A stretch of 64,000 bases of DNA from Octopus sinensis (taxonomy: Eukaryota): assembly GCF_006345805.1 (NCBI RefSeq), contig NC_043004.1, positions 76,012,001 through 76,076,000 of the forward strand. The letters are read 5' to 3'. Position numbers and translations under genes: made by a program. Below are positions 15,587 through 61,555 of the stretch, in pieces. Positions within the stretch are counted from its first letter, which is position 1. Each line of letters starts with the position of its first letter. The notes below the pieces were generated by a model. It saw nothing but the letters and a program-made list of their open reading frames with translations, did no database searches and was not told the origin of the DNA.

Positions 15587-15835
15587 TTAGGCCAGCACAT
15601 GTTTGCGTACTTTGGAACGTACCACTTGTAACATAATTAGTTTTCTAGCCCCGAACTTATCACCTAACGCCACAATAGTGCTGTTGTCTTTACTCATTGT
15701 TACAAAGAACACATCCATGTTTGTATTGAAAGCACAGATCTGCGATCCTGTCTGTGTGCGCCAGAGACGTATTGTACCATCTTGGGAACCAGATGCAATC
15801 ATCTCGTTATCAGATGAGATAGCAACACAAGACAC
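15587..15835 (-). CDS. Last coding exon: WD40 repeats and TAA stop
   Basis: [30 protein letters not shown]...[10 protein letters not shown]; an AATAAA lies 28 nt downstream (15554-15559). Confidence 0.92.
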   Translation of the reverse strand: MSCVAISSDNEMIASGSQDGTIRLWRTQTGSQICAFNTNMDVFFVTMSKDNSTIVALGDKFGARKLIMLQVVRSKVRKHVLA

Positions 15836-16394: not shown

Positions 16395-16425
<31 letters not shown>

Positions 16426-19400
16426 ATATGTAGAACAAAAAGACAAATTATATATATATAATATATAGATGAGAAATTTTATATATATCATCATCATCAT
16501 CGTTTAACGTCTACTTTCCATGCTAGCATGGGTTGGACGATTTTGACTGAGGGTTGGCGAGCCAGATGGTTGCACCAGGATCCATCTTGATCTGGCAGAG
16601 TTTTTAAAGCTGGATGCCCTTCCTAACGCCAACTGTAGAAACTCTACAGTTGGCGTTATATATATATAGATATAGATATAGATATAAAATATGTTGAAAA
16701 ATATTTAAAACTGGGACCTACCTCTCGTGTATGACCAACCAAAGAGCTGCCCAAAACTTCATTCTTCATGTCCCAAACTTTGACAGTTCCATCAGCTGAA
16801 GCAGACACCAAAACACTAGAATCTTCAGACAGAGCTATTGCAGAGACCTCTGATGTATGCGCATGCAAACCAGAGGAAGAAAGCAGCTGGCGACTTGGCT
16901 GACCATTACGCAGGTTCCAAATGACAAGGTCTCCATTCCTTAAGCCAGTAACAGCTTCGTCTTGGGGTAAAACTGCTGTGCATTCTGGATTAGCATCCAT
17001 TTTCAAGATGCTTGGTTCCACGACGTTGTAGCTGGTTAATGTCATGTCAAAGACAACAAATTCGGCGCTGTTGTCAAATGTGTTGTTGAAACCGGCGACA
17101 GCATATCTGTTGTTCTGCGATAAGCACAAGAAGCTGATGTAGTCGTTGTTGCCCACACTTGCCTCATAGCGCATCTCCTTGATGGGTTGGTTACCCAACA
17201 GATCCCATACAATGATGCTGGTGCTGTTTGCATATTTGTCGGTTCTTCCAAGGGCAACTTTATCACCGTCAGACAAAACTTGCAGAGCAGAACAATATTC
17301 CTGATCAGCCATAACCAATGGGCTTCCTGTCTTGAAATCCCAAATCTGGATGATTGAATAAAAACAAGTAAATAAATAAATAAAAAATAAAAGAGGATGA
17401 ATATAAAATATAACAAAATAAATATAAATAAACATCAGGCGTAGGAGTGGCTGTCTGGTAAGTAGCTTGTTTACCAACCGCAAGGTTCTGGGTTCAGTCC
17501 TACTGAGTGGCACCTTGGGCAAGTGTCTTCTACTATAGCCTCGGGTCGACCAAAGTCTTGTGAGTGGATTTGGTAGATGGAAACTGAAAGAAGCCCGTCG
17601 TATATATGTATATGTATATATATGTATGTGTGTCAGTGTTTGTCCCCCCCAACAGCGCTTGACAACCGATGCTGGTGTCTTTACGTTCCCGTAACCTAGT
17701 TGTTCGGCAAAAGACACTGATAGAATAAGTATTAGGCTTACAAAGAATAAATCCTGGGGTTGATTTGCTTGACTAAAGGCGGTGCTTCAGCATGGCCGCA
17801 GTCAAATGACTGAAACAAGTAAAAGAGTAAACATCAATTTTGTATTCTAACTCTTATGTTAGAAATCATTTCTTTTTACTGATTACACCCAAGCATTTTA
17901 ATGGAAATATGGTAAATTCCATGTTTCACTGGCGAAATCATAATTCTTTCTAATTTTTGGCATAATGTCAGTAATTTTGAAGGGAAGGGGTAAGACAACT
18001 ACATTGACACCAGTGCTCAACTGGTACTTATTTTCTGAACCCTGAGAGGACGAAAGACAAAGTTGACCCCAGAATGAAAAACTGTAAGAAATGCCATTAA
18101 GCATTTTGTCCTGTTTGCTAATGACTCTCCCAGATTGCTGCCCTCACTGATGAAATCATAATAAAACTGAAACATGTTCCAAGTTATCTCCCTTAATTGT
18201 AAGAAGTGAAATATTTCCTTTCCTTTCTTTGGTGGCTCAATCGGTCACTTAAATGTTTGGTCAAGTCTACCAAGTTCTATTAAGGTTATGACAATTGTTA
18301 CAATGGATTTGTAGAGGGCTTAAGTCCTGATGGTATTGTAGGGGCACTGACATGATATACTGTGTGTCTTGGGAATTTTTATAGCTGACAGAGGAATGGT
18401 ACCCTCTTTGAGTGTGAACATGGCTGATTTAAAGAGAGAGAGAGAGAGGGAGAGAGAGAAAGAGAAAGAGAGAGAGAGAAAAAGAGAGAGAGAGAAAGAG
18501 AGAGAGAGAGTGAATATATATAATGGTTAGGTTCCAGCCCAGGCTTCAGCAACAAAGTTCAGCCTCCATACTTCTCGGCCCAACATCGCTGAAAAGGAAA
18601 GTGAATGAGAATGGGGAGAGAGAGGGAGGGAGAGAGTGAAGAAGAGAGAGAGAGAGAGAGAGAGAGAGCAAGAATGAGAGAGGAAAGAAGGAATGAACAT
18701 AACACAGGAAGAGACTTGATTAGTCCAATCAGAAAAGATGTAGGCCAAAATTGAGCTTAGTCACATTTGAGTGCAATAAACCAACATGGTTGCTCAAAGT
18801 ATTTGATCTGATGCTCCAATGACAACTGATAAAGAATTACTGGAAATGGAATAAAAAAAAAAATAACAATGAAGAAAAACAAAAAAAAAACAAGTAAAAA
18901 ATGCCCTGACCTGTAGGTTCCTATTTGTCACTCCTTTCTTTGTGGAAAGTTCATTGACATCCAAGTTATCTGTATGTGCTGAACCAACAAGAAGTTGGCC
19001 ATTGCAAGCAAGATGAAGGTTTGAGGCACCAACAATGTTGCCTTCCATTGCTCGAATAAGTTCACCAGTCTGAAAGGAAGTAAAAAAAAACAATCAAAGA
19101 CTTATCAGAGTTCATCATTTACATTATTTACATTCGACGGATATCTGTCCTCATCTTGTTTGTTGTTAACATGTTTCGGCTGATAAACCCTCCAGCCTTC
19201 ATCAGGTGTCTTGGGAAAATTTCGAACCTGGGTTCTCATTCCTAAGGTATTTTTCAATGTTAAGGAACTTGGAGATGTATATCTGTTGATAAGAGGAACA
19301 TTAGCACAGGAAAAGAAGGATGAACTTGAAAAAAGATATGAAATAAAATTTAGGGACTTTGTGATTTTCACAGTGATATAGGAAAAAAAGGACAAGTAAG

Positions 19401-25057: not shown

Positions 25058-28000
25058 GTTAAGGTCACTGCTTGGAATCAAACTCGGAATCTTGGGGTTA
25101 GTAGCCCGCGCTCTTAACCACTACGCCATATCTGTCGAATGTAAATAATGTACATAATTCCTCATCTCTTAAATATAGAACTGTAAGAAAGGGTTTGTTT
25201 TTTACCTGCATATTCCAAATTTGAGGAGCACCTGTTGTGGAACCAGTGACAACAGTTTTGCCATCAGAAGTCATTAAACAGCAATCAACCCTGACTCCAT
25301 CTGCAATAACCACGGGTCCACCAATTGATGCCATGCTTCCACCGCCTGTATTGTAACCAGAGGCATGAGATTCGAAATTCGATGCGGAATATGACTTCAT
25401 TTGGTATTGGTAAGAAGATGACAGAGTGTTGCTTCCAGAGGCATAGCCGGAGGCATCGAGAGTGTTCTGAGAGAAGATATTGTCTTGCATTGTTCCTAAA
25501 CCTCGTGAACTTCCGCCACCACTCGACGCTCCTAATGTTGAATACATGGCATTGTTGTATTGCTGCTGTGAAAAACTGCCGCTTGTTGAGTGTGCCATGT
25601 TGCTTGTGTGAGTGTTAGATTCATAGTTGTAGTTTGCGACATTTTGGTCACCGCCGCCATAGCCAGCAGCGTTGTTTACATAAGCGAAATTTGAAGAACT
25701 TCCACCTCCTGCTCCAGCTGCTAAGTTGGTACTGCTGTCTGTATTCAAATTGACGGAACTCTGTTTAGCAGAGTAGTGAGCCGACGAAAACGATGTAGCA
25801 GCGCGGCCTTGTTGAGGGGTCCCGATCACGGTTCCTTTGTTTGAAAACGTGCCAGTGACGCGCAGGGTTGCCGAGTCACTGGAACCTGCGGCTGCATTAT
25901 TGATCTGAGTACTGGATCCACCGCCACTACCGATGTAAGTGAAACCGGACACGCTTGATCCACCGCCACCGCCGCCGCCGCCAGCCGATCCATTAATCAG
26001 GCCCTTACTTGATGCTGCTGCACCCACGTTACCAGACGACTGTTGTATGACTGGCCCAGACGTTGGTGGGGATATGGAAATTCCACCTCCATCTGTTGTC
26101 GATGAACCCATAGCAAATCCGCCCTGGCTTAATTTTATAAGACCAAAAGCGAAACCGGCTCCAAGGACAAGCAAACCTAAGAATGTTCCAGCAGCTGCTC
26201 CAGCTCGGTCGGCTGAACCAATTCCCTCGGCAATGCTGGCCCCAGTGCCAGCACCACTGAAAGCAGAAGGTGCCGCTTTGACAGGTTGAGCAACAATGGC
26301 GGCGTAGTGAGGCACATCAACAGCTACACCAACACCACCATTTCCAGCGTCAGCTATGAGAATTCCGTTAATCCCTGGTGGAGGGACAGAGACCGGTGGT
26401 ACAATCACACCACCTCCATCTCCACCACCACCACCACCACCACCACCACCATCTCCTCCTCCTCCTCCTCCTCCACCACCTGATATAGGAGGAGGAGTAG
26501 TTGTTACATGCGGAGGAATAACCACGTTTGTTCTCCTGAAATATAAAAGAAAATACAAGGAAAGTTTTAGAAATAATGCTAAAATAGATTTAAAAAAAAG
26601 TTCTGATAGAGGCATAGGTCCACATTTTAGGAGTTAAAAAACAGTTTATTAAATTAACTCCAGTAGTTAACTGGTACATGCTTCATCAATTTTTGGCGGA
26701 TGAAAAGCAAGAGTGACCTTGGTGAAGTTTGAACTGAGAAAAATCAACACATATATAACTCTTAAAGTGGTGAGCTGGCAGAAACGTTAGCACGCTGGCA
26801 GAAATGCTTAGCAGTATTTCGTCTGCCATTACATTCTGAGTTCAAATTCTGCTGAGGTCAACTTTGCCTTTCATCCTTTCAGGGTCGATAAATTAAGTAC
26901 TAGTTGCATATTGGGTCAATCTAATTGACTGGCTCCTTCCCGCAAAATTTTGGGCCTTGTGCCTAGAGTAGAAAATATATATATAACACTAGCTGAATTA
27001 CCTGGTAATACCTGAGTAAAATAAATTAGATAAATAGGTAGATTTACAAAGACATTGACAAATAGTCCACATATTGTAGCTGGCATTATCACATGTCATA
27101 GCTTATTGTAGCTGATTTATAAACATGTGCTACAGCACCCACCACCACCTAGGAGGCTCTTGTATAGATTTTTATTGAAATGCAATTAGCCTATCACTCA
27201 AATGGATGTTAGTTTAACATGTATGCAAAGTTTCATCAAGATTGGTTTACTGGTGTAGGCAGCACGATGGTAACAGACAGAAATTGTCATTTATGTATAA
27301 GATGCTCTATGTCTGTATATTTTTCATTTTTCATTGTCATCTAGTTTCAGCTCACGAGCTGTGGCCATGCTGGGGCACTGCCATTCGTTGGGGCACCGCC
27401 ATATATATATCCTTTTTTTTTTGTGAGTTACACTTTAGTATTTGAAGTTGTAGAATTTGTTCCGCTCTCTAAGATTAATATTTTCTAAAATCATGGGACA
27501 TGAAACGGAATCATTCGGTACAGTTTTTGGTATTAATTGTCTCATAATACTCTTTTATTTGTTTCAGTCATTTGACAGTGGCCATGCTGGAGCACTGCCT
27601 TAAAGGGTGTTAGTTGAAGAAATCGACCCCAGGTCTTATTCTTTGTAAGCCTAGTACTTATTCAATTCATCTCTTTTACTAAACTGTTAAGTTACAGGGA
27701 CATAAACACACCAGCATCGGTTATCAAGTGATGGCAGACACAAATATACACACACAAACATACATACACACACACACATATATATATATAAAATAAAAAA
27801 AATGGGACAAGAACGCAAAACATCCAGATAGACAATACAAAGAAAATAAGGATGAGTCATTCAGAGTTTTCTTTTCTCAGTCGAGTTCCAGATTATCTTT
27901 GCAATTTTGACTGGTTATACTCAAGATTGCTCCAATCTGGCCAGCCCCAAGGAAAAACTAAGCTAAGAGCATTAGATTCCTTTCGTTACTAGCCCAGCTG

Positions 28001-31000
28001 AAACTGGCTGTGGCTCTGAGTACAAATGTCTTGTTTTCATAAGTTTTGAATTTAAAATCTTCCACCAAACCTTAGTCATAATTTATGTTCCTAACACTAG
28101 CTTAATGATAACTAAGTTATTTTACTAAACTCTTTGTTATATTTAAAATAAACTGAAAGAAACACAGAGCATCTCAAAATAAATACAGTAACGAAAGGGT
28201 TAAAGTTGGAGAGAGAATAAGGTGGGCCTTAACCCTTTTGATACCAAACCGGCTGAAACTACCCCTGGCTTTGTAGTACAAATGTCTTGTTTTCATGAAT
28301 TTTGAATTAAAATCTTCCACCAACGGGTTAAGCACCAAATCCAGTATATCTGCAATAAACCTTTTAACTTACCCTGAAAGAGAATATGGTATATCTGCAA
28401 TGACGACATCACCTGATAAACTCTTTTTATTCAGTTTCTCAAACAGGAATAGATTATTGAAATTGTAACCTGGCCAAAAGAATAAAATAATAAAAGATAT
28501 TAAATTTAAAAAAAAGAGAATATGATTAGAACTCAATAGAATGCAACAGGACAAAAAAATCAGAGTATGGGGACTGCCAAATGTGGAAGATGAAAAGCCC
28601 AGCAATACTTGTTATGGGGGCATTTGGAGTAATAATGAAAGAAATGGAAAAATTTGTAAATATGGTACCAACAGGTACAGCACACATTTTATGAAGCGCT
28701 CTATTAGTTTGAGTTTTATAGCATTTTCTTTGAGTACCAAAGGGGAACACCGTTAAGCGAAAAGTTAACTTTGTTAACTATTAATCCGTTAACCAAAAAT
28801 TTAACTGTGCCAAGGGATGGAGAGGTTTAAGTATGATAAACGGACAGGAACTGGTGTCTTGCTGTAGAAATCTTACATGGCTATCCCAGGTGGAAGGTTG
28901 TACCCCTTGGGCAAAAGTCTTCTATTGCAAACATGAGCTGATGCAAGTCTTGTGACTGTAACTGAGTGTACAGAAACTGTACTGAAACCTGATAGAGGGA
29001 ATAAACTAGTTTATGGGTGCCAGGCTTAATCTACTGCTCAATTTAACATCACCACTAAAGGTACCTCGGATGCCTTTAGTAATAATAATAATGAAATTAT
29101 TGTATACAGTGCTCAGGTGCACCACAACTTGTCAAAAAGCATATACAGTAATGTACAAATGTCTGGAAAGTGAACAGTGTATGAGTCTGGTACATGCTTG
29201 CGTGTGTATGGAGGGAGAAAATCAGGTGTAGTGTTGGCGAATCTCAGGAAGCATGGAAATTTTGAAGGATGCAGTGCTCCGACAACTAACAACTGATGCC
29301 GGCAGTTTGTTCCATGCTTTAGCAACTCTTAGCGTGAAAAAATGTTTCCGAAAGTCATGGGAGCTGAGCTGTTTTCTGACTTTGTAAACATGTCCATGGG
29401 TGTTAGACAGGTGGAGTTTGAAAAGGTGCTCAGAGTTATTGTTTGTAAGATGATTAATAATTTTATGGGTGTCTGCGAAATCAGCTGCCAGACATCGGAG
29501 TTTCAATGTATCCATGCTCAGGGAAGTAAGGTGTTCAGAATATGGCAAATGCCTGATGGATGGTATTCTCTTGATTGCATGTCGCTGAACGGCTTCCAGA
29601 CGATTAATATCCTGGGCAAGAGAGGAGTTCCAGACAGGTGATGCAAATTCCAGGTGAGGCCGCACCATAGCTATATAAAGCTTCAGATAGGTAGCTGGAG
29701 AGATAGCTAGAGATATCCGCTGTGTTGCAGATTTGGTCTCAGGTCAGAAGAAAACTTGATATCTTGATCTGTTCACTTCCTCCAGTTTCAAGTTGTGGAA
29801 TTTGTTTCTTTCTGCTGCTTTTTATTCCCACCCGTCTGTTGCATTACCTCCCTTGGCAGCCTAACTGTTCTTTCTTCTCTCCCTTTGACAAAACCATATA
29901 AAACGGCATCAGATACAAATAGAAAAACATTTGCGACTCATAAGCTGGAGTAATCGAGCGCAATCGCTGCTGCTGCTGCTGCTTGTTTGTTTGTTTGTTT
30001 GTTAAGCGAAGGGGTCTTCGTCGCAGAGCTCGCAAGATCGCGCCTCTGGAGAAGTTCGAAATGTGGTCCTTTGCTATTCGTAAGACCCGCAGAAGAGAAA
30101 GCAGGTCAACCCCCGACACCGAGAGCATCGATGGATGGACGAATGCGCATCCAGGCTCAGCGGTTGTGTAGGAAGTCGGGGACAAGAAACAGGAAGAAAG
30201 AGTGAGAGAAAGTTGGAGCGAAAGAGTACAACGGGGGTCGCCACCACTCCCTGTTGGAGTCTCATGGAGCTTTAGGTGTTTTCACTCAATAAACACACAC
30301 AACGCCTGGTCTGGGAATCGAAACCGCGATCCTCCGACTGCAAGTCCGCTGCTGTTAACCGCTTGAAGTAAAAAAGAAAGAAAAGGTACTCACCTCCAAT
30401 GATACCATAAAACGGTTCTTTGTATTCACTAGCAGAGATCTTTTGAGCTGCACCCACGGTTATTGTAGTTAATTTATCAAAATAGCCAGCTGGGTAGGTA
30501 TCTGCAAGTAAAAAGATTGGGTTAAGGTTTTCTAACAATGTCATAATGAACAACTGAAAATAAATGGACAAACGAGTATGTAGTGACGCTATTTTGGAAG
30601 TTTTTAGCGTGCATGCGCAGAGTTGGATTACTTCCAGTAGGCCGCCGGAAGTTCCCTCATGCGCATGTGCAGAGAACTGCCAATAGAAAGTTTTCCCGCT
30701 AGATCGGCCTTTTTGAAGCTGCAGCCCTATCGAGTGGACACGACTCAACCTTCTCTCAAGGAAAACCCAACACGTAGAGAAGCCCCCTTCTATGCGGGAA
30801 TGGAGACAGCATTTTGGCTCACACAAGTTAACTATTGTGAATGGTTTTATGGACTTGGCTACCAGTTTCGCCCTGAAGAAAATATATGTGTATAGATTTT
30901 ATTTTTGAATCCAGACAAAATAAAGTATTATTTATTGCTGTTGAAGATAGTTTAAGTTTTGGTTTTCCCTTCGACACAATTGAATGCAAAAGGATAAGAC

Positions 31001-34799: not shown

Positions 34800-35576
34800 T
34801 GTGTGTGTGTGTGTGGTGTGTGTGTGTGTGTATATGTATTGCCCATGCTGGCATGAAAGGCGGATGTTAAACGACGATAATGATGATATGTGTGTGTGTG
34901 CATGTGTCTTTGTGTTTCTCCCCACTCACTGTTTGACAACTGGTGTTGCTTTGTTTACACCCCTGTACTTTAGAAGTGTGGCAAAGGAGACTAAAAAGAG
35001 ACCAAGTATGAGACTTTAAGAAAATAAATTCTAGGGGGTCAATTTATTCAACTAAACCCTTCAAGATGCTGACCCAGCATGGCTGCAGTCCAATGACTGA
35101 AACAAGCAGAATAGCAGATACTTAAAATAACAAGAAAATAGCACAAAAAAAACAACAACAATGTCTGACCTTCGTTTTCACTGGTAATACTTTCAATATT
35201 ATCTATTATCAAGACAGAGTCTGTAAAATTTCTCCTGAAGTACAAAGTGTGATATTCTCCATCACTGTAGTTCCCATTGCTGCTTAAGATGTGTTTACTT
35301 CCAGCTGTATCATAGATGGCCTGGATTTTGCCATCAACCTGAAAAGATAAATAGGGTCTGATACAGCCATAGTCACTACACTTTGAAATATTACTGTTGG
35401 CTGAATATATTTTATTTTGAAAATAAAAATAAAAATGTTTATCTTGTCCTGCATTTTATGAGAAATGGTGTTTGTTGCTTGCAGGTTTTTAACAGTTCAG
35501 TCACAGGTTCATAGCAATTTTGAAGGAAGGATGAGGGACCATCTCGCAACTTGGCAAATATATGTACATACATGCA

Positions 35577-41600: not shown

Positions 41601-44600
41601 TGAATTTTGTAACAGAGGTTATTTCTCTTAATCATATACATACATACATATATATATATATATTTTGCCATGAAGGATCGCTAGCCTCTAAACCCTTTTT
41701 TATTTTCTCTCTCTGCCTATTTCTGTGTTCCTTTCTGTTGAAGAGCGTAGGCTCAAAACGTAAAAGACTTTCTCACTTCCCAAGCATAAAACTAATACAT
41801 CTGTTTGTTGTTTACACACCTGTCTTCGTTTTTTCTTTTGTTTTTTTTTTGTAAATTCCAACTATACACACACACATGCACACACATATAGACACATATG
41901 TATATAATTTTAGTATTTTTTTTTTATTATGGCCTGGTTCCAAATTGGGTCGCAACAACTAAGTCTACCCATCGCACTTCTTGGTCCATCGTCACTGCCT
42001 TGAGGTCCAGGATACCATTCCAGGCCAGTGTCTGCAATTCAGTTGCCGACAACATTTTCCTCTTATAAATGAATTTATAATATAAATTTACAGTTAATGT
42101 AAAGAGCATTTCCAAAATATTCTTTAATACCATTAAAAAAACTATTTTTTTACCTTTCTTTGGCCGTTGACTGTTATAATAAGTTTCAAAATTCCATTTT
42201 CAAGTACAGCCATTGCGCTGTCTGTGGAATTTTCAGCTGTCGTATGGAACAGGGTAGTGTTACTGAGATGTGTCTTGAAGCGTAGGGAAATATCATTTGT
42301 ATGAGAGCGTATAGCATCAGCAAAGATAACCCAGGCCCCTTTGGTGCCATCAAACATGGTGACAGGAGCAGCTGTAAAAGAGATTCATTTATGGATCAAG
42401 TATTTATAAAGTCTTGCTATTGTGCTTTGCAATTAACTCCTATTTTAATTTATGAAGATTATGTCTGACAGGCATTAGATTTATTATTTGAGAAGACCTG
42501 TCAAGCCTGATGAAATCGTAGTTGTGGACGATGCTAGTGGTGGGTAGCTGGCACCACCACTGCCTGACAACTGCTGCTGGTGTGCTTATATCCCCATAAC
42601 TTAGTGGTTCGGCAAAAGAGACCGACAGAATTAATACTAGACTTTAAAAAAATTAAGTATCGGGGTCGATTCGTTTAACTAAAACAATTCTCCAGGGCAG
42701 TGCTCCAGCTTGGCAGCAGTCTAATGACTGAAACGAATAAAAGATAAAAATCTAGATGTCCCGTATTTGTGTAATGAAATGGAACACATTGAAGTTGATC
42801 AAATGAAATAAATTCTAAATACCTTGACCACAATTGGGGCCAGTGAAAGGCTCGTTGGTACAGTCACAACTATAACCATTCCAGTAGTCAATGCAGTTGC
42901 CATTTTTACATGTTGTGCTGTCACACTGGGGTACAATAGGGTAACAACGAGCATCGATAGCGCGACCGAGCTGGAATCTTCCCACATTACTGAGAAGGTT
43001 GGTTCTGATACGGTTCATCTAAAAGAGAGAAAAAGAAAAAGAAAATATTCATTAAATGTAAAAGAAAATGGTAATTAAGTGATGGAAGTGATGACGATAA
43101 TGAGGATGATGATGATGACAGTGATGAGGACAATGATGAATGATGACGATGATGATGATAATTGCAATAATGATGATAATATACGCTGATGATGATGATG
43201 ATGATATAGATGACAACGGAAATGATAAAGATGGTGATGATGGTGATGATGATGATGATGACAGTGATGTGGACAATGATGTTGATGATGATGATAAGGG
43301 GAAGGACAAGTTAACTCACCTGCACATTCAGCAAACAACCTTGGTATCCCTTCTTAGCCCAAAGGTCCCATGGCAGTCTGTTAGCATTTGGTACCCAACC
43401 AACATACATTGGACCTGCCAGTGGCCGATTCTGTCTTTCGTTGAGATTCAGACGAACACTCTTCTTCTTGTTATCCAATTCCAACTTCAGAAATGTCTTC
43501 AGGGGGTTAATCGTGACGGTGGCTTCGTGAGCTTGACGATCGTTAACAATGGTATCAAAGAAGCTGACTCGTTTGCTTCCATCACCAAAATTGTAGACAA
43601 AGTAGAGTTTCCCTTCAGATATTTCAACGGCCGCATAGTAGCGTGGGTCGCCATTGTAGAACATCAAACCTTCAGGGTCATTGGTGTAGAACTTGAACTT
43701 GAGTTGACCCCCTTGGGAGACGTCCCAAGCATCGGTCTCCACATAGCTCTGATGACGCACAAACGTTATTGGAGAGAACGTGTTGGGTGGCGTTTGTGAA
43801 GGAGTGATGAATATAGGGGTGTGGGTCGTTGTTGGATGGACCCCGTGGATAATCTGTGGGTTCATATTCAGAATGTCCAAAACATATCGGCCAGATGTGT
43901 AGATCAGCTGAAAGGAGGAATAAAAAAAAGGGTTGAATCAGTGATTGTTGCGGGGTTAGTAGTAGTAGTAGTAGTAGTAGTAGCAGCAGCAGCGGCTATA
44001 ATGATTATGATAGGCACAGGTATGGCTGTGTGGTTAAGAAGCTCACTTTGTCACAATGTGGTTTTGGGTTCAGTCCCACTGTACAACACCTTGGGAAATG
44101 CTGCCAAGCGTTTTGTCCAGCATGCTAACAATTCTTATTTCTTTATTGCCCACAAGGGGATAAACAAGGACAGTCAAAGGGATTAAGACGATTACATCGA
44201 CCCCAGTGCATAACTAGTACTTAATTTATCGACCCCGAAAGGATGAAAGGCAAAGTCGACCTTGGTAGAATTTGAACATGGAACGTAACGGCAGACGAAA
44301 TACCGCTAAGCATTTCGCCTGGCGTGCTAACGATTCCGCTAGCTTGCTGCTGCTTCTGATGACAGTGATGATGATTATTCCACAAGACCTGGAATTTGGG
44401 GGAGGGGATTAGTTGATTACATCGGCTTCCCCCAGTGCATCACTGGTACTTATTTCAATGACCCCCCAAAAGGACGAAAGGCAAAGCCGAATTCAGTGGA
44501 ATTTGAACTCAACAGAAGAAACGGTGCTGAACATTTTTGCCTAGCATGCTAAAGACCCTACCAGCTCACCACCTTAACAACAACAACAGCAGTGGAGGCA

Positions 44601-47305: not shown

Positions 47306-48403
47306 ATAATAATAATAATAAACTTGCAGCTTACATTGCCTGCAATACCCTTGAAGTTTTTGTTAACCTCTGATGAGGTGTAGTCAATGTTATCAGGGGT
47401 TCCACCAATGAAGATGTAGTCTTTGGGTTGTAATAGACTGATGGAAATTGGCAGACTGAAAGCTTGTCTGTAGATGTCATCAACACTCCAGTAAACCTGT
47501 GAAGATAAAAAGATGAAGAAAAGTTTTAAAAATTAATGTTTTGAGGTGTATAAATAGATATGTATATATATATATATCTAGGGGGAAAACAAGAAGAAAA
47601 TGGAGAATAAGTAGTTGTAATTAATAATTTATTTGTATGTTAAAAAAGATGACATTAAAAAAAATAACAGTACAAATAAATTGATTAGAAATTGAGAGCT
47701 CAAAGAAAAATAAATTAAAATAAACGAAACCTACATATATGTTTCAGTTCTATCACCTAGTTGATGGGAATTTCGAAGCATTTGGTTTAATGCGAAGAAA
47801 AATTACCACATTCTAACTATATGGTGGTAGGACTTCTTCAGGGTAAATGATTACTTAGATAATCATTTTCTTTTGAGGGGAGTATAGAGTATGAGTTATA
47901 TCATCATCATCGTTTAACGTCCGCTTTCCATGCTAGCATGGGTTGGATGGTTCAACTGGGGTCTGGAAACCCCAAAGCTGCACCAGGCCAGTCAGATCTG
48001 GCAGTGTTTCTACAGCTGGATGCCCTTCCTAATGCCAACCACTCCGAGAGTGTAGTGGGTAATTTTATGTGCCACCGACACAGGTGCCAGACGAGGCTGG
48101 CGAACGGCCATGCTCGGATGGTGTTTTTTATGTGCCACCGACACAGGTGCCAGACGAGGCTGGCGAATGGCCATGCTCAGATGGTGTTTTTTTATGTGCC
48201 ACTGACACAGGTGCCAGACGAGGCTGGCGAACGGCCACGATCGGATGGTGTTTGTTACGTGCCCACAGCATGGAGGCCAGTCGATGCGGTACTGGCTACG
48301 GCCACGTTCGGATGGTTTTCTTATGTGCCACCGGCACTGGTACCACAAAGATACAAATTCCATTGATGTTCATCGATTTTGATTTGGTTTGATTTTGATT
48401 TTG

Positions 48404-48949: not shown

Positions 48950-51900
48950 AGAATTCACAAAAGACGAAGACAGGTGGTGTAGACAACAAACAGATGTATT
49001 AGTATAATGCTCGGGAAGTGAAAAAGTCTTTAACGTTTCGAGCCTATGTTCTTCCACAGAAAGGAACAAGGAGAGAAAATAAAGAATGTGTAGTGGCTAG
49101 TGATGTATCATGATGAAAATATATATAATCAGAAAATGGAGAAAACTTTTGATTAACAAACAAACAAATTGGATCACATCTGTAGATTATTTTTTAATAG
49201 CCCATTATCGTTACGATAGTAACAAGGAATATTAGAAACTGATACAGAGACCACATCAAAGTTATTGAGTGTGTGTGCTTACGGTGGTGTGTTACTAAAC
49301 TCTCTACTCTGAGTTTGGGTGAGTGAGTGTCGTGTCAATAGCATCGAGGTACAATTATTTTCAGTTGGATTTTCAACCTTACTGCACCTTACTGGCACTT
49401 GTGCCACCAGCGTCGCCTTACTGGCACTTGTGCCACCAGTGTCGCTTTACTGGCACTTGTACCCGTGCTAGTAGGGTGCCAAGAGCACCATCCGATGTCG
49501 AAACAAAGAAAATGATATACTAACTTCAAAAATGGTCAGGGTGGCGCTTATGATACTCTTTTACTAAACACATCAATTGTAATATGTGTTTTACAAGTGT
49601 TTGTGTGTGTGTGTGGAGGGTAAATGTCATGATGTATGCATGTGAATACTTTCAAATGTGGTGTGAGTGTATGGAAGGAAAAATACATTTACTCTCATCA
49701 CATCCATTTTCTATGCTGGCATGGGTTGGACAGTTTGATAGGAGCTGACCAGCTGGGGAGCTGCACTAGACTGCAACTGTCTGTTTCAACATGATTTCTA
49801 TGGCTGTGTGCCCTTTCTAATGCCAATATCTTTACAGAGTACATTGGGTGCTTTTTATGTGGCACACCATGGGAGTTTTCTGTATGGTGGCACCATGTTA
49901 AAAACTTTGGCACTGGTGTAACATTTGTGTGTGTACATGCATATTTTTGTCAGTTTGGTATGAGTATTTATGTATATGTGTTCATGAGCGAATGCTAAAT
50001 GTGCCTGTGTGTGTGTGTGTGTGTGTTTCTGTATGTGTGTGTGTGTGTGCATGCGTTTGCATGTGTTCGGACTTGTATGTGTGTATATGCCTGTGTGTGT
50101 GTGTGTGTGTTTCTGTGTTTACATGTGTGTATGTGTGTGTGCATGTGTCTTTGTATGTGTGTATGTGCTTGTGTGTGTGTATGTGTTTGTGTACACATCT
50201 GTGTGTGTGTGTGTTTGTGTGTGCATGCGTTTGCATGTGTGTGTAAATGTTAAATCCATGCAAGTGTGAGCAGGAATATAGCAAAATGAAGGAAAAAAGG
50301 AGACAAGAAACAAAAGGAAACAAACTGCCTCACCTCGTGGCCATCTCTTCGCAAGAGGACATTGTGCATTTGGCCATCATTAAATGTGACATTACTTGGC
50401 TTCTTCATCTTCCATCTGTATTTCTGGCCATCAGGTCCAATGATAATCAGGAAAAGGTCACCATCCTACAAGAGACCCAAAGAGATTTTATCACAAAACA
50501 ATTGATAAAACACTGATGAAATTTGTTCATTTCTGTATTTTGTTTGCAGATTTCTTTTCCATTTATTTATGAATTTTTAAAAACAGATTATATATATAAG
50601 CCTCAATAGCTTCTTTTTCAGAAAAATTATTTTGCAGAGGGCAGCACTCAAATGATGGAGATGACAGTGGCCTGCATCCTTCTTACTGTCCTATTTCAGC
50701 TTCTATAGATTCAAATTGAAAACCCATCTGAGAAATACAAATAAATGTGCTCTGTACATTTCCTAAAATTCAAATAATGTAGTTTGAACTACAGTAATGT
50801 GAGGTTCCATAGAGAAAGAACTCACCATTGGGAGTCACTGGTGACTCTCATGGTATAATAAAAATGCAGTATGGGGTGTCACTGGTGACTCCCATGGTAT
50901 ACCAAAAACATAGTGTGGAGAGTCACTTATGATTCCTATGGTATATTAAGAATATAACACTGGTGAGTCTTATAGTTTATCAAAAATATAGTGTGGAAAG
51001 TCATTTATGACTCCCATGATATATTAAGTATATAATGGGAGGAGTCACTGGTGACTCCTGTGGTATATTAAAAATGTGGTGTGGAGAGTTACTGGTGACT
51101 CCCATCATATATTAAAAATATAGTGTGGTGAGTCACTGATGACTCTCATGGCATAAGAATGCAGCATGGGGTGTCACTGGCGACTCCCATGGTATATCAA
51201 AAACAAAGTGTGGAAAGTCACTTATGATTCATATGGTATATTAAGAATATAACACCGGTGACTCTTATAGTTTATCAAAAATATAGTGTGGAAAGTCATT
51301 TATGACTCCCAAGATATATTAAGAATATAATGTGAGTAGTCACTGGTGACTCATGTGGTATATTAAAAATGTGGTGTGGAGAGTCACTGGTGACTCCCAT
51401 GGTATATTAAGAATATAGTGTGGTGAGTCACTGATGACTCACATGGTATATTAAGAATATAGCATGGGGAGTCACTGGTGACTCCTATGGTAAGTTGAGT
51501 GTTAAAGTTATTTGTTTGAATTTTCTAGTAACACAACTTCAGAAAAAGTACTCACCTTGATGTACAAAAATATTTTACGTGAGCTGTCAAGGGCATACCA
51601 TAAAAGACCTTCCCTTTGAGAAAGATCATTCTTGAATTTTAATTTGAATTGTTCCTTATTCGGAGAAACATGGTGAGTATCATTCCGGATAGAAATGTTG
51701 AAACCATAGTAACTGTTTCCACTTAGAGTGATAGTCTGTTCAGCTGAAATGAAAAAACAAAAAATGATTTTAATATACACAGCTATATCTATGCATATTT
51801 ATATAACACATATATGATATATATTTTTGCACACATATGCATCTGTAAATATACAGATGTATATATAGTCACATATTTATATATATGGGGAGCAGTTTTT

Positions 51901-54715
51901 CTTTTACAGAATGTTTCATTAAATACACAACTACGTTCAAGTTATTTTTTATTCTATACTAGCAGTATCGCCTGGCGTTGCTCGGGTTAGTTTCAACCCT
52001 ATACTATTGGAATTTTGGAAAAGTAAAAATTTTGCATTATGTAGCTTGTTATTCTCTTTAAGTGAACATTTTTCTGGTTGAAATACACCGCAAAATGGTG
52101 ACGCGGCAGTAAAAAAATCGTAAAAAATAGGGATTTTCATAGAAAAAAAGCCCCTTTTTGATGTAAATAATTTTTGGTCTCAACATGGTCTGATTTGAAT
52201 TTTATCTTCTATGGAAGGAAGAGCAAGCCTTCTTTCATACTCTCAATTTTGGTCAACTTGTGCTGCAGGGTCTCGGATGAGATAATGTTAGTTGAAGGCT
52301 ACCAAACCTGCCACACACAGACAACTTCAGCTTTATATATATAGAGATTTTTCATTTTTTTCTTATTAGCATTTTACAGTTGGTTTAGAATAGTAGAGTT
52401 CCTAAATCCATATCTGAAGTTTCCAGAACTTCACAGTCTTATTACCAAGAATTGAATTTGAATATATTTGGTGTGTGGGTTATTTCTAATATACAGAATG
52501 AATTCATGTACTCTTTCCTAGACTGAATAAATAAATACTAGGTTTAAAAACTAGTACAAGGATTTATTTGTTCCATCAAGCCCTTCAAGGCAGTTCACCA
52601 ACATGGCTGCAGTCCAATGACTGAAACATGTAAATAATATGATCTATCTATATTTATATATATTAAGGTTACTGTTGGTTTCATGTTAAGAAAAGTAAGA
52701 AAATATTTTAGTGTCTAAACAATTTTTCAAGCCGATCACATGGAGAAAGGTGTTTACCTCCATTCTGGAAAACAGCCAAAATGGAGGCGAACACCTTTCC
52801 CCATATGTTCAGCTTGAAAAATTGTTTAGACACTGGGATATTTTCCTACTTTTCTTAAAGATGAAACCAATGGTAACCTCAATTCACAAATGCAGTGTTG
52901 AACATTAAACGATGATGATGATGATGTTAATTATAAAATAAAAACCGTTATGCAAATGATACAATCTTGAAATTCTACCATATCTTTAAATTTATCAATT
53001 CATTTTTCTTTCAGTCAGTGAAAAATAGTATTTTTCCAAGCTGTAACTAAAACATAACTATGTAACTTATATTATGTACTTACGCTTGGGTTTATGATAG
53101 TTTCGGTTTCTTCGCCAAAGTTCCATCTGTTTCACAAAACCATTGAAATAATAACTGTTAAGGCTATCTTTTAGAGAGCGACCAATGTATGTTTTTGATG
53201 AAGTAGACCGTTTCTGATGTAAGTAGGGTATAGTATCATGTGCAACCTCTCTCCGGTTCAAGAACAGTCTCAGACCAACATCTGGATACCAATCCAGTTC
53301 AATATATTGCCAAGTTCCAGCTTCAAACTCCGTAGTGTTTACATGCCAGGTCTGAGTAGATGTTCTCATTTCGGCATGGAGTTGGCCGTCTTTGTAGTAA
53401 ACCGATGTAGGGTAGCTGTCAAGGAAATATGTGTTGTCAATAAGTTTATCAGCTTTCAAAAACAATCGCATCACATGGCCATCAACGCAGTTTTCTAAGT
53501 CTCCACCGCAGGTCACATCTTTGCCCACATCGATATATTGGTCCTGGCCATTAAGTCGGATGACATTGCCCTCGTCACTGCTAACCAGATCAGGGTAACC
53601 AACCATGTTAACACGAGGGAGAAGTAGTCGATCAAAACGAAATACCATTTCAGGACTCTCAGTAGCAACTGCAAAATAAAATGCATGAGAGAAAAGCTGA
53701 AGAACTGACAACATAATTTCACTTCATTTTTTTTTGTTTTGCTTTTCTTTTTTTCTTTTTTTAAAAAAATTTTTATACATTTTCATTTTTAATATGAATG
53801 AAATCAACCTCAATATTGGTTTGAAATTTTGGTACAAGGCCAGTAAGTTCTGCAGAAGGGGTAAGTTGATTACATCGACCCCAGAGCTCAACTAGTACTT
53901 ATTTTATCGACCCTGAAAAGATGAAAGGCAAAATTGACCCTGGCAAGATTTGAACTTAGAATGTACAGACAAATGAAATGCTGCAAAGCATTTTGCCCGG
54001 CATGTTAATGATTCTGCCAGCTCATCAATCTCAATATAACTATGACTTACTGACAAATAGAATCAAAAGCTTTTCAAATGGAATAACCACCCATCCAAAA
54101 AAAAAAAAAAATTAAAAAAGGGTGAGTAATGAGGTGAATAATATATGCTTTATACTTTTCCACTTCTGTTTTTGTTAATTAGTTTATTAAGCAATTAAGA
54201 GCATACTATAGTCTTTAGCAAAAGACTATATTATAAGTTAGAATACATTAAGTCAAGCACCAGACAAGATTAGAGATAGAGTTAAAAAGAAAGAGTTTGA
54301 AGAATCTGAAATAAGCTCTGAAGAGAACTTCTAGCTTCAAGGAAGCAACAGGACAACATGGCAACAGGTGCAAGTTCTTGGTTAAAGACATTTCTGACAA
54401 TGCTGTAGCAGACTAAGGTTGTCTCAGAAAAGGCTCATGCCCCAAGAGCAAAGCTTTTATTACTACATACATACATATATATATTAATCAAGGCACATAA
54501 TATTATAGATCCATTTCAGCCGATCTTACCAATTGGTTTTGTACAGGATATAAGGTAGCCAGATATTTGATAATAGTGCAGTTGAGTAACACCACTTGCT
54601 CTTCAGAGATGGTATCCAGTTATCTAATACCCAGTGTGAAACTGATAGTTTGTGATCAGCTGGAATGGGTCTATAATACTGTACAAATTATTCCAACTTA
54701 TGCATTCTTAGATGA

Positions 54716-57437: not shown

Positions 57438-57469
<32 letters not shown>

Positions 57470-60018: not shown

Positions 60019-60054
<36 letters not shown>

Positions 60055-60251
60055 GTATATACATACATGGTAGGCTTCTGTTAGTTTCTGTCTACCAAAT
60101 CGACTCACAAGGCTTTGGTTGACCCGAAACTATAGTAGAAGACGTTTGCCCAAGATGCCACACAGTGGGACTGAACCTGGAAGCATGTGACTGGGAAGCA
60201 AGCTTTGCTGCTTACCACATAGCCATATATATATATATACATATACACACC

Positions 60252-60299
<48 letters not shown>

Positions 60300-61555
60300 T
60301 ATATATATACATACATACATATATATACACACATACATGTACACACATGTAATATGTGTGTGTCTTTGTGTTTGTCCCCCACCACCGTTTGATAGGCAGT
60401 GTTGGTTTGTTTGTGTTCCCATTACTTAGTAGTTTAGCAAAAGAGACTACTAGAATAAATACAAGACTGAAAAATAAGTACTAGGCGTGGTTAATCCAAT
60501 TTAACCCCTCGAGGCAGTGCTCCAGCATGACCACAGTCCAATGGCTGAAATAAGTAAAATATAAAAGATCTCAGGGAATATTTAAGAAATTTTATCAGTC
60601 ATATTCTTCATGGAATAATACCATTGAGTGTTATTGCCAAAGTAATGGTTAACTTGTTGCTCAAGATGGAAAGTGTTGAGATTGTTCTTGCTTGAATGGT
60701 CTCAGAGTTAAAGGAGCTCATTTAAGTACCATACATTTGGAATAATCAGGGTTAAAAAACCCCTAAAAGTATCTCATCAGTGATTTCCTTATAGTTTCAT
60801 GGTTGATGGACAAAATGATAGTTTCCCTTCATTAACATTCCACCAATGTAAAAGTAAAAAAAAAATTGCTAAAATAAAAAAAACAAAACAAGAGATAAAT
60901 AAACAATATATTATTAGAACTAAATTGATTTACTTACCATAAGATGGTCCAAATCCATCAAGGATTCCATTGACGCTTGTTCTGTAGTATTGCACTTCAT
61001 CAACATCAAAATCAGGTGTGAACCGTCCAACATTATTTCCAGTGGTACCGATGTATATACCTTCAGCAGGTGTGTCACCTTGCATGAAAGGTTTTGCAGT
61101 TGTTGCTTGTGCAACCTTCTCAGGGTTTATATACAACTTGGCACCCCTTGCTGGGTCCCAACTCATAATCACCTGTTGCCAGACATTTCCCTTAAATTTA
61201 GGGGTGGACATTTCCCAAGAATGGGTTGCATTTTGGAATTTAGCATGGAGAATATTATCCTTCGAATACAGCGAGTAAGCTGGACTTGAAATATAATATT
61301 TCTTGCCTTCAAGATCATATGGTTTTAGCCATAGACCAAGCGTCAATCCAGTCTTACAATAGTTGAGATTGTAAATACAATCCTCCATATTACCGTCGAT
61401 ACGTACATACTGACCTTTTCCATTCATTGTTACACCGTTGCCGAGCCGTCCTTCGACCACACTAGCACCATTGACTAAATTGATAATAAAGTGAGAGTTT
61501 TCAACAATGTCATTTTTTTCAGACTCCATAGAGAAAGGCTCCGGCCCACTGCCAT
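15587..61555 (-). CDS. Neurexin-like single-pass membrane protein with cytoplasmic WD40 propeller (5'-partial; 19 exons traced, 6572 nt, ~2190 codons)
   Basis: Exons 61555-60938, 53668-53084, 51743-51556, 50465-50334, 47496-47335, 43907-43320, 43018-42823, 42371-42154, 40370-40262, 39677-38943, 38635-38516, 36662-36478, 35338-35170, 30501-30394, 28469-28373, 26535-25206, 19069-18911, 17345-16722, 15835-15587. All introns are GT-AG, the phases chain without a frameshift or stop, and the domains continue across the junctions. Confidence 0.88.
16722..17345 (-). CDS. Exon: WD40 repeats
   Basis: IWDFKTG...IVWDLL...VIWNLRNG...[33 protein letters not shown]...LVGHTRE. Confidence 0.93.
18911..19069 (-). 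CDS. Exon: WD40 blade
   Basis: [32 protein letters not shown]...RNLQ; joins IWNMQ/TGELIR and RNLQ/IWDFK in phase 0. Confidence 0.88.
20929..21773 (-). mobile_element. Non-autonomous Helitron carrying a Pif1-helicase fragment
   Basis: 5' TC(TTTATATAT), 3' CCCGAGCAACGCCGGG hairpin plus CTAG; ORF 21108-21524 contains AILAPRN..V.HIN..L..IPGE..VY.SID...YP.E.LNS. Confidence 0.88.
21776..22960. repeat. ~166-bp tandem repeat (~4 units) interrupted by a SINE
   Basis: Unit starts TTCGTCCTAAAAAAC at 21776, 21942, 22108, 22273 and resumes at ~22852. Confidence 0.85.
22341..22851 (+). mobile_element. tRNA-derived SINE with an internal ~105-bp duplication and ATACAT TSD (family copies ~17440, 24236, 58630)
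   Basis: GGAGTGGCTGTGTGGTAAG A-box, CCGGGTTCAGTCCC B-box, TTGGGCAAGTG core; flanked by ATACAT. Confidence 0.82.
25206..26535 (-). CDS. Exon (1330 bp): Pro/Gly stalk, TM helix (~26137-26200), low-complexity tail, first WD40 blade
   Basis: Single open frame: poly-Gly stalk, [21 protein letters not shown], a G/S/N/Y-rich region, then [28 protein letters not shown]. Confidence 0.9.
27979..28331. mobile_element. Two adjacent copies of the piggyBac-type MITE
   Basis: Reverse-complement match to 1118-1346; ends AAGGGTTAA and TTAACCCTTTTGATACC. Confidence 0.78.
28373..28469 (-). CDS. Exon: LamG-5 end
   Basis: [31 protein letters not shown]; ends in phase 2, matching the next exon. Confidence 0.8.
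29080..29800 (-). mobile_element. CR1-type LINE 3' fragment (RT C-terminus)
   Basis: [17 protein letters not shown]...LEAVQR.A...Y.E.L..L...L..R...D...[15 protein letters not shown]. Confidence 0.88.
30394..30501 (-). CDS. Exon: LamG-5 late part
   Basis: [35 protein letters not shown]; tacttgcag acceptor, GTGAGT donor, phase 1-1. Confidence 0.82.
30583..30690. promoter_or_regulatory. Promoter-like motif cluster (NRF1-like x2, ETS, CCAAT)
   Basis: GCGTGCATGCGCA 30607-30619, CCGGAAGT 30645-30652, ATGCGCATGTGCA 30659-30671, CCAAT 30680-30684. Confidence 0.35.
31540..32225 (+). mobile_element. Composite SINE with (GAT)n tail; abundant family (other copies/fragments near 1860, 2517, 5478, 6270, 7728, 8140, 8450, 9545, 10320, 16490, 47901, 49690, 57970)
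   Basis: Recurrent ...GTTAGGAAGGGCATCCAGCTGTAGAAAC...CCAACCCATGCTAGCATGGAAAGCGGACGTTAAACGATGATGAT. Confidence 0.8.
32581..33710 (+). mobile_element. Non-autonomous Helitron (DINE/HINE-like)
   Basis: TATAAACGGCAG-(TGTC)n head, 3' CCCGGGCAACGCTGGG plus CTAG; shares blocks with 41046-41416. Confidence 0.82.
33711..34012. repeat. ~300-bp interrupted (AT)n microsatellite (others at ~13200-13520, 49980-50250, 43080-43300, 55220-55320)
   Basis: Direct inspection; these tracts produce the poly-IY, poly-CV and poly-HT ORFs. Confidence 0.95.
34057..34139 (-). ncRNA. Type I hammerhead ribozyme motif (Penelope-like fragment), sense to the neurexin-WD40 pre-mRNA
   Basis: Minus strand: stem I CTTTC/GAAAG, core CTGATGA, stem II GAAGA/TCTTC with an inner TATTCC-TTT-GGAATA hairpin, GAAA, palindromic stem III ACATATGT, cleavage triplet GTC. 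Confidence 0.78.
35170..35338 (-). CDS. Exon: LamG-5 middle
   Basis: [13 protein letters not shown]...[24 protein letters not shown]. Confidence 0.9.
36478..36662 (-). CDS. Exon: LamG-5 N-terminal part (LNS6/beta-neurexin-like)
   Basis: [48 protein letters not shown], resembling neurexin [22 protein letters not shown]...LVRVDS...DYLELHI. Confidence 0.9.
38516..38635 (-). CDS. Exon: EGF-like domain 2
   Basis: [33 protein letters not shown] (a different frame from the ORF track). Confidence 0.92.
38943..39677 (-). CDS. Exon: end of LamG-3 plus LamG-4 (LNS5-like)
   Basis: [12 protein letters not shown]...[24 protein letters not shown]...DDKWHSV...[11 protein letters not shown]...[12 protein letters not shown]. 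Confidence 0.93.
40262..40370 (-). CDS. Exon: LamG-3 middle
   Basis: [36 protein letters not shown], close to neurexin LNS4 AGYNLNDNEWHTVRVVRRG. Confidence 0.9.
41046..41416 (-). mobile_element. Short Helitron deletion derivative, same family as 32581-33710
   Basis: TC start, hairpin plus CTAG end, near-identical head sequence. Confidence 0.85.
42154..42371 (-). CDS. Exon: LamG-3 N-terminal part (LNS4-like)
   Basis: VTMFDGTKG...[11 protein letters not shown]...[17 protein letters not shown]. Confidence 0.9.
42823..43018 (-). CDS. Exon: EGF-like domain 1
   Basis: [32 protein letters not shown], with the neurexin-type EGF spacing (W/Y-x-C-D-C). Confidence 0.92.
43320..43907 (-). CDS. Exon: Thr/Pro linker plus LamG-2 (neurexin LNS3-like)
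   Basis: [11 protein letters not shown]...[18 protein letters not shown]...[18 protein letters not shown]...VND...MYVGW...GYQGCL. Confidence 0.92.
44598..44950 (+). mobile_element. tRNA-derived SINE (copies 15097-15390 on +, ~29950-30362 on -)
   Basis: TGGCCCAGTGGTTAGGGCAGCGGACT...GGTTTCGGTTCCC head with a shared body. Confidence 0.78.
45678..46770 (-). mobile_element. piggyBac internal-deletion derivative with TTAA TSD
   Basis: TTAA-CCCTTTCGTTAC ... GTAACGAAAGGG-TTAA; ORF 46096-46488 has an acidic N-terminus then [22 protein letters not shown] (PGBD-like). Confidence 0.88.
47335..47496 (-). CDS. Exon: LamG-1 C-terminal part
   Basis: [54 protein letters not shown]; not in the ORF track. 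Confidence 0.85.
48509..48909. repeat. 401-bp fold-back with 191-bp arms and a 19-nt loop; probable inverted Penelope pLTR
   Basis: Arms 48509-48699 and 48719-48909 are reverse complements with 2 mismatches. Confidence 0.9.
50334..50465 (-). CDS. Exon: LamG-1 middle
   Basis: [44 protein letters not shown] (LamG ND..H.V..R motif); not in the ORF track. Confidence 0.85.
50831..51490. repeat. ~43-bp degenerate minisatellite with a ~295-bp higher-order period
   Basis: Recurrent GAGTCACTGGTGACTC-CCATGGTATATTAAGAATATAGTGTGG; the block from 50864 recurs at 51159. Confidence 0.85.
51556..51743 (-). CDS. Exon: LamG-1 N-terminal part
   Basis: [14 protein letters not shown]...FKLKFK...EGLLWY...FLYIK; catttcag acceptor, GTGAGT donor. 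Confidence 0.85.
51959..52347 (-). mobile_element. Short Helitron derivative
   Basis: TCTCTATATATATAAAG start; CCCGAGCAACGCCAGG...CTAG end. Confidence 0.8.
53084..53668 (-). CDS. Exon: pentraxin/LamG_3 module 2, phase 1-1
   Basis: [16 protein letters not shown]...CGGDLENC...[19 protein letters not shown]...TYIG...VKQMELW; a clear paralogue of the previous exon. Confidence 0.9.
55323..55578. repeat. Fold-back element, family copy 2
   Basis: ~125-bp imperfect inverted arms with the same sequence as 2889-3158. Confidence 0.8.
60938..61555 (-). CDS. Exon: pentraxin/LamG_3 (ConA-like) module 1, phase 1-1
   Basis: [20 protein letters not shown]...[12 protein letters not shown]...[19 protein letters not shown]...IYIG...VDEVQYY; tttgcacag acceptor, GTAAGT donor. 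Confidence 0.9.

Follow-up and report, generated by a model that had tools for sequence, protein, structure and literature searches.

The 64,000-nucleotide (nt) stretch of Octopus sinensis contig NC_043004.1 analyzed here, referred to as the window, carries on its minus strand the 3' two thirds of a gene, LOC115215064, whose predicted product joins an array of LamG and EGF domains to a WD40 propeller. We read this region as part of the Octopus sinensis ortholog of PHRED-1, a planarian protein whose full name is Pharynx regeneration defective-1, and thus as a member of a type I membrane protein family reported only from lophotrochozoans, and we give this assignment a probability of roughly 0.8. 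The in-window product comprises two LamG3 modules, an LNS2-LNS6 cassette, a Gly/Pro stalk, a transmembrane helix, a linker of ~280 amino acids (aa) and the WD40 propeller. The gene is real and correctly spliced, and its architecture is already known.

Gene model and membrane span

The gene was reconstructed from tblastn seeds, followed by a splice-site search constrained by the RefSeq protein XP_029640070.1, a 3285-aa Octopus sinensis entry titled "uncharacterized protein LOC115215064 isoform X1". Across the 64-kb window, 19 exons were recovered on the minus strand (61555..15587; Table 1), yielding a 6573-nt frame whose translation matches residues 1096-3285 of that protein exactly. All 18 junctions within the window are canonical, with acceptor AG and donor GT, and the first in-window exon starts at 61555, behind an acceptor AG at 61557-61556. 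An initial annotation, made from the letters of this DNA, had spliced 19 exons by hand into a frame of ~2190 codons, which proves identical to residues 1096-3285 of the RefSeq model. The three junctions that it had singled out (28373/26535, 25206/19069 and 18911/17345) are exactly those of the reconstructed gene, each with a polypyrimidine tract and AG on one side and GT on the other; correct splicing of a 46-kb, 19-exon gene is possible by hand from sequence alone. The extent of the gene was underestimated: the splicing of 61555..15587 is correct, but the gene is cut by the window and encodes 1095 further residues upstream. LOC115215064 spans ~142 kb, and residues 1-1095, outside the window, comprise the signal peptide, one LamG domain, a Cys-rich EGF-like stretch and four LamG3 modules.

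The acceptors AG at 61557-61556 and AG at 61476-61475, which set the exon start at 61555 or 61474, correspond to the RefSeq isoforms X1 and X2, respectively. Isoform X2 is 27 aa shorter than X1, at the start of a LamG3 module, and the isoforms of Octopus bimaculoides show the same 27-aa difference.

When spliced, the four C-terminal exons (26535..25206, 19069..18911, 17345..16722 and 15835..15587) form a single frame of 786 codons, in which a stalk, a hydrophobic segment, a low-complexity region and the WD40 repeats follow one another. The two most hydrophobic 19-residue windows of the 3285-aa protein are residues 10-28, in the signal peptide, and then residues 2614-2632, in the transmembrane segment. 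Exon 16 (1330 nt) contains one open frame that covers the stalk, the transmembrane helix, the 277-aa linker and the first propeller blade; since helix, linker and first blade lie within this single exon, the link from membrane to WD40 requires no splicing. The linker is composed of 21% Ser, 19% Gly, 10% Ala and 8% Asn, with 16 charged residues among its 277 aa. Long poly-Gly runs, encoded by GGN repeats, occur in the exon 16 stalk (~26480-26400, minus strand).

Table 1. Exons of the PHRED-1-like gene in the window and the protein segments they encode
Feature	Positions	Strand	Residues or length	Content
Exon 1 of the window	60938..61555	-	aa 1096-1302	LamG3 (ConA-like) module, 'PTX-like 1'; alternative acceptor gives start at 61474
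Exon 2	53084..53668	-	aa 1302-1497	Last LamG3 module, 'PTX-like 2'
Exons 3-5	51743..51556, 50465..50334, 47496..47335	-	aa 1497-1657	LamG aligned to neurexin LNS2
Exon 6	43320..43907	-	aa 1658-1853	Thr/Pro linker and LamG equivalent to LNS3
Exon 7	42823..43018	-	aa 1854-1919	EGF equivalent to neurexin EGF2
Exons 8-10	42371..42154, 40370..40262, 39677..38943	-	aa 1919-2273	Two LamG equivalent to LNS4 and LNS5
Exon 11	38516..38635	-	aa 2273-2313	EGF equivalent to neurexin EGF3
Exons 12-15	36662..36478, 35338..35170, 30501..30394, 28469..28373	-	aa 2313-2499	Last LamG, equivalent to LNS6
Exon 16, 5' part	26199..26535	-	aa 2499-2611	Extracellular stalk, 30% Gly, 12% Pro, poly-Gly runs
Exon 16, transmembrane helix	26130..26198	-	aa 2612-2634	Aligns with the transmembrane segment in all orthologs
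Exon 16, cytoplasmic low-complexity linker	25299..26129	-	277 aa	
Exon 16, 3' end	25206..25298	-		First WD40 blade (GVRVDCC...IWNMQ)
Exon 17	18911..19069	-	aa 2943-2995	Propeller part
Exon 18	16722..17345	-	aa 2996-3203	Propeller part
Exon 19	15587..15835	-	aa 3204-3285 and stop codon	Last blades and 17-residue family motif

Ectodomain and WD40 propeller

Pfam analysis of the spliced product placed Laminin_G_3 on the two exons that had been labelled 'PTX-like' (9e-9 and 9e-6, the second of these exons scoring 26.4 bits, slightly below the cut-off of 27.6) and Laminin_G_2 on the LamG exons (1e-19 and 1e-25). No pentraxin family in Pfam was matched by the 'PTX-like' exons, so the label stands only for a ConA-like LamG3 fold. 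Over the full-length XP_029640070.1, Pfam reports Laminin_G_2 in six stretches, Laminin_G_3 in five stretches and WD40 at 8e-20, while EGF (PF00008) appears in the domain list of the O. bimaculoides protein that represents its 90%-identity cluster.

The 1004 aa encoded by exons 3-15 align as a single collinear stretch to neurexin-1alpha (3qcw, residues 230-1211; E value 1.5e-113), and the neurexin-1alpha crystal-structure sequences 3poy and 3r05 align to this ectodomain in a similar manner. On the basis of this collinearity, the five LamG and two EGF domains correspond to LNS2-LNS3-EGF2-LNS4-LNS5-EGF3-LNS6. The neurexin-like block described in the initial annotation is indeed colinear with alpha-neurexin, but its five LamG domains are LNS2-LNS6 and not LNS3-LNS6. 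By sequence, the whole protein reads like an alpha-neurexin into which six LamG3 modules have been inserted after LNS1-EGF1. The reported absence of the neurexin tail motif is also confirmed: in place of a short tail ending in a PDZ ligand, the transmembrane helix is followed by ~650 aa, and the last residues of the protein are not the same from one ortholog to the next. Because this short tail is missing, the gene should not be classed among the neurexins, even though two relatives bear neurexin names in RefSeq ('neurexin-1' for Aplysia XP_012941838.1 and 'neurexin-1-like' for an older O. bimaculoides model). The PHRED-1-type family probably coexists with canonical neurexins rather than replacing them.

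In the C-terminal part of the spliced product, Pfam detects WD40 (PF00400) at 5e-22. The last 382 residues were modelled with AlphaFold using an 11-sequence family alignment, giving an all-beta structure of 30 strands with a mean predicted local distance difference test score (pLDDT) of 86.6 and a predicted template modelling score (pTM) of 0.84. The best Foldseek matches of this model are ODA16, Rsa4/Notchless, TBLR1, Fbw7 and the designed protein Tako8, with template modelling scores (TM-scores) of 0.63-0.72; seven-bladed propellers cover less of the query, at a TM-score of ~0.53. ODA16, Rsa4, TBLR1 and Fbw7 are eight-bladed. Tako8 is eight-bladed according to its structure title. The model thus suggests that the closed WD40 propeller is probably eight-bladed, the eighth blade probably being formed by the C-terminal segment that begins DVFFVTMS and ends in the 17-residue family motif. 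All seven W/F-D/N blade-end motifs listed from the sequence are present, but the predicted structure fits eight-bladed propellers best.

Taken as a predicted protein, the product bears out the architecture first proposed for this locus: its LamG/EGF ectodomain is of the alpha-neurexin type and is followed by a single transmembrane helix, a low-complexity linker and, at the C-terminus, a WD40 domain. No NACHT domain was found by Pfam in the 3285-aa product, only the generic WD40 family exceeds the Pfam cut-off in the WD40 part, and the nearest PDB sequences and folds are likewise generic WD40 proteins. The proposed derivation of the WD40 part from NWD1/NWD2 by exon shuffling finds no support, as judged on Pfam families, PDB sequences and folds and not on NWD1/NWD2 sequence.

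Relatives in molluscs, annelids and flatworms

A search with the 786-aa query including its low-complexity linker returned generic WD40 and Gly-rich candidates only, and no ortholog. With the linker removed, the query retrieved an O. bimaculoides protein at 91% identity, whose 90%-identity cluster includes XP_029640070.1. In a HMMER search with the WD40 part, three representatives matched over the full length, in one stretch and at the C-terminus. The WD40 domain is 61% identical to that of octopus in Aplysia (XP_012941838.1, 1764 aa), 55% in the scallop Ylistrum (XP_060080039.1, 2626 aa) and 54% in the annelid Owenia (CAH1790210.1, 3736 aa). In all three proteins, a signal peptide precedes LamG and EGF repeats, after which come a stalk, a transmembrane segment, a low-complexity linker and the propeller; for Owenia, this layout was read directly from the sequence. 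The 3853-aa clam protein Ruditapes XP_060587717.1 groups with WD40 fragments from this family, and six proteins are collinear from the end of LNS6 through the stalk to the transmembrane segment. Aplysia, Ylistrum, Owenia and two further members share a juxtamembrane motif, W-A-x-W/Y-x-C-K-P-G-C-C, which we take to be a possible palmitoylation site.

The propeller is the best conserved part of the protein. A four-way alignment of the octopus, Aplysia, Ylistrum and Owenia WD40 domains has a mean column identity of 69% and identities of 52-61% between octopus and the other three, with long motifs invariant from octopus to annelid, while the C-terminal residues differ between orthologs. Between O. 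sinensis and O. bimaculoides, identity reaches 98.8% in the WD40 part and 94-96% in the ectodomain. When the WD40 alignment was used for a profile search, most of the hits were short fragments and bacterial WD40 proteins rather than long orthologs, so the phyletic spread described here is a sampled one. Among the matches listed, the named relatives are all molluscs or annelids (Octopus, Aplysia, Ylistrum, Ruditapes, Mya, Owenia and Helobdella), alongside many contigs without a species name. Mass spectrometry of hemocytes encapsulating schistosome sporocysts detected a snail protein, Biomphalaria glabrata XP_013086335.1, that matches the Aplysia family member best (PMC6281880).

Transcript-like contigs show the same combination of domains. 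Contig L002 (Logan SRR21676451, 8037 nt) holds a complete 2500-aa frame with signal peptide, LamG, EGF, transmembrane and WD40 segments, including about ten EGF domains; its flatworm-like protein resembles planarian PHRED-1 as described and is collinear with that of octopus, the two being 39% identical across the entire propeller and 23% across 933 ectodomain residues. We rejected the identification of this contig as S. mediterranea phred-1, given that three phred-1 quantitative PCR (qPCR) primers of the planarian study remained unmatched at up to 3 mismatches, which indicates another species. A second contig of 3628 nt encodes a 1082-aa frame with LamG, EGF, a transmembrane segment and WD40. 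A third (Logan SRR29271481, 2254 nt), presumably from another cephalopod, aligns at ~75% DNA identity to exons 17, 18 and 19 of the window, which follow one another directly in it without introns, and its protein extends upstream into the end of exon 16. With orthologs in gastropod, bivalve and annelid genomes, the system is not the lineage-specific one that had been suspected; on these comparisons, the fusion is neither an artefact nor specific to octopus.

PHRED-1 of Schmidtea mediterranea is predicted to span the membrane, with a signal sequence, six LamG and nine EGF domains outside the cell and WD40 repeats inside (Adler and Sanchez Alvarado 2017, bioRxiv 10.1101/131789). Its first cDNA clone, of 3 kb, already contained LamG, EGF, the transmembrane region and WD40 repeats together; 5' rapid amplification of cDNA ends (RACE) extended it to an 8-kb transcript encoding 2536 aa, and an antibody detected a protein of >270 kDa (bioRxiv 10.1101/131789). 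Muscle cells express the gene and wounding induces it; upon RNA interference (RNAi), muscle fibres become thickened and disordered and gut branching is disturbed (bioRxiv 10.1101/131789). By reciprocal BLAST, homologs were reported in lophotrochozoans only, with Octopus named as a direct homolog and the C-terminal WD40 region described as strongly conserved among them (bioRxiv 10.1101/131789). The octopus product agrees with this family in carrying LamG, EGF and WD40 in one polypeptide (Pfam, over an exact frame of 19 exons), in its N-terminal signal sequence and single transmembrane segment before the WD40 part, for which type I topology is predicted, and in its strongly conserved C-terminal WD40 domain (four-way alignment and the 39% identity to the flatworm-like protein). 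Of the canonical neurexin features, it shows the LNS/EGF cassette in alpha-neurexin order but not the short cytoplasmic tail with a PDZ-binding motif.

The architecture, floated as possibly novel, is thus that of PHRED-1, published with the same layout (bioRxiv 10.1101/131789), and the exact gene model is already in RefSeq; because PHRED-1 is a characterized family, the novelty claim falls. What seems unprecedented beside vertebrate and fly proteins is a described family in molluscs, annelids and flatworms. Literature after the 2017 paper merely cites PHRED-1, and a literature search for a cephalopod protein with laminin G, WD40 and a transmembrane segment found none. The planarian study is said to have appeared later in Dev Biol.

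A peroxiredoxin gene adjoins the PHRED-1-like gene on the opposite strand, in convergent orientation, with one exon at 582-785 (plus strand; AhpC-TSA, E value 4.8e-13) and probably another at ~4990-5060 (plus strand); this neighbour is present in both O. sinensis and O. bimaculoides. The long introns are repeat-rich, including repeat-like sequence between exons 12-15, and (TA)n and (CA)n microsatellites are abundant in the window. A short interspersed element occurs in many copies (for example at 17700-17500, 22570-22315, 24460-24220 and 58740-58560, minus strand), and the copy just upstream of exon 17 provided the false start of a WD40-only O. bimaculoides model of 2015. Three intronic frames (29743-29225, 21554-21111 and 46494-46099, minus strand) and two downstream of the gene (10039-9836, minus strand, and 11128-11370, plus strand) are presumably retrotransposon, helicase-type and DNA-transposon remnants. 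None of the five has a Pfam match.

Alternative readings and known counterparts

Several observations weigh against the assignment to PHRED-1 as a single fused gene organizing muscle. The current O. bimaculoides RefSeq model (XP_052825988.1, 2509 aa) ends after exon 15 as ...PYSLSG-RTGSATEEMS, with no membrane span, and in the annotation of that genome the WD40 part stands as a gene of its own, of 336 aa. The LamG-to-membrane junction at 28373/26535 rests on the gene model and on cross-species comparison. Octopus lacks the juxtamembrane W-A-x-W-x-C-K-P-G-C-C motif and carries 10 other residues there (window ~26130-26100, minus strand). Orthology to PHRED-1 is argued from architecture, from the statement of the planarian study and from similarity to flatworm-like contigs, one of which, the 8037-nt contig, is not matched by the phred-1 qPCR primers. 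The muscle role is extrapolated from one flatworm study, and the candidate snail relative in Biomphalaria hemocytes suggests expression outside muscle.

The split O. bimaculoides annotation raises the question of whether two adjacent genes have been wrongly fused: one for a secreted, neurexin-like LamG protein that stops after exon 15, the other a WD40 gene starting in or after exon 16, with or without an anchor of its own. The 2509-aa LamG protein with its 10-aa tail and the 336-aa WD40 gene inside the locus would fit such a pair, as would the 2015 UniProt O. bimaculoides model A0A0L8FK86, which contains WD40 only, and an in-frame ATG at 26615 ahead of exon 16. Against such a pair, the exon encoding the 10-aa tail stretches the gene range to 440 kb, over other genes, and has no counterpart in the window (RTGSATEEMS was not found on either strand at up to 3 substitutions); A0A0L8FK86 starts within an intronic repeat; and the stretch with the ATG is a polypyrimidine tract belonging to a canonical acceptor. 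In an older RefSeq model of O. bimaculoides ('neurexin-1-like', 1741 aa), the LamG exons were already connected to those of the WD40 part, with exon 16 skipped; the poly-Gly sequence of that exon, easily masked or poorly assembled, may be the reason for its absence from the O. bimaculoides models. Moreover, LamG, a transmembrane segment and WD40 occur in one product in models or contigs of at least five other species, as well as in the planarian cDNA with its 5' RACE, and the junction region is collinear across species. A pair of separate genes is therefore very improbable, and the split model would represent an annotation problem or, at most, an alternative secreted isoform. The fused O. sinensis model is the one favoured by comparison across species, which indicates that the current O. 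bimaculoides model needs revision. Still less credible is the idea that the WD40 exons survive only as a remnant, decaying or untranslated, in a pseudo-fusion without function, to which we attach virtually no weight: nothing speaks for it except that the LamG gene as currently modelled in O. bimaculoides has no WD40 part, while the frame is open over four exons with canonical splice sites, the fold is confidently predicted by AlphaFold, and the conservation of the WD40 part contradicts it, identity between the two Octopus species exceeding that of the ectodomain and long invariant motifs being shared with gastropod, bivalve and annelid proteins at 52-61% identity.

For an intact PHRED-1 ortholog, the signal peptide would place the LamG/EGF part outside the cell, where it may bind matrix or a cell-surface ligand, and a flexible, disordered linker would tether the propeller beneath the membrane. 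The strong conservation of the propeller suggests a conserved cytoplasmic partner that it recruits. If planarian PHRED-1 is taken as a guide, the most likely job of the protein would be muscle-cell adhesion or matrix coupling that organizes myofibres, rather than synapse specification. The initial annotation had favoured a synaptic or sensory system, and such a role could be imagined for an intact gene in octopus, with the LNS cassette binding neuroligin- or dystroglycan-like partners and the propeller serving as a built-in presynaptic scaffold. An ectodomain clearly of the alpha-neurexin type over five LNS and two EGF domains, together with the neurexin names given by RefSeq to two relatives, would be in keeping with this role, but the only functional data for the family come from planarian muscle, in the form of muscle-cell expression and a muscle-fibre phenotype, a possible snail relative was detected in hemocytes, and the neurexin tail and PDZ ligand are missing, with C-terminal residues that are not conserved. 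We regard a mainly synaptic or sensory receptor as unlikely. Equally doubtful is a change of role in the cephalopod branch of PHRED-1, towards the nervous system or suckers instead of or besides muscle, with the propeller and the Ser/Gly/Asn/Tyr-rich linker as its own submembrane scaffold; this possibility is raised by the loss of the WAxWxCKPGCC motif and by the poly-Gly expansions in the stalk. What interest the locus still holds comes from what the propeller does and from the disagreement between the two Octopus annotations.

Among known systems, the eight-bladed scaffolds ODA16/DAW1, Rsa4/Notchless, TBLR1 and Fbw7 resemble the octopus propeller in fold, at TM-scores of 0.66-0.72 over ~370-420 aligned columns, but share only 14-19% sequence identity with it and are all soluble; nothing indicates a common partner or function. 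The alpha-neurexins (vertebrate NRXN1-3 alpha) have, like the octopus protein, the order LNS2-LNS3-EGF-LNS4-LNS5-EGF-LNS6 followed by a stalk and a single transmembrane helix. They differ from it in the cytoplasmic part, a short tail of ~55 aa with a PDZ ligand as opposed to ~650 aa of linker and propeller, and in lacking the inserted LamG3 modules. Planarian PHRED-1 is shorter (2536 aa against 3285 aa) and has nine EGF domains where the octopus protein has two or three. Octopus, like the annelid Owenia and unlike the planarian, carries about six LamG3 modules between LNS1-EGF and LNS2, and it lacks the juxtamembrane CKPGCC motif of other family members. The layout is nevertheless common to PHRED-1 and the octopus protein: behind a signal peptide, both place several LamG and EGF domains outside the cell, then a single transmembrane segment, and a conserved C-terminal WD40 domain inside.

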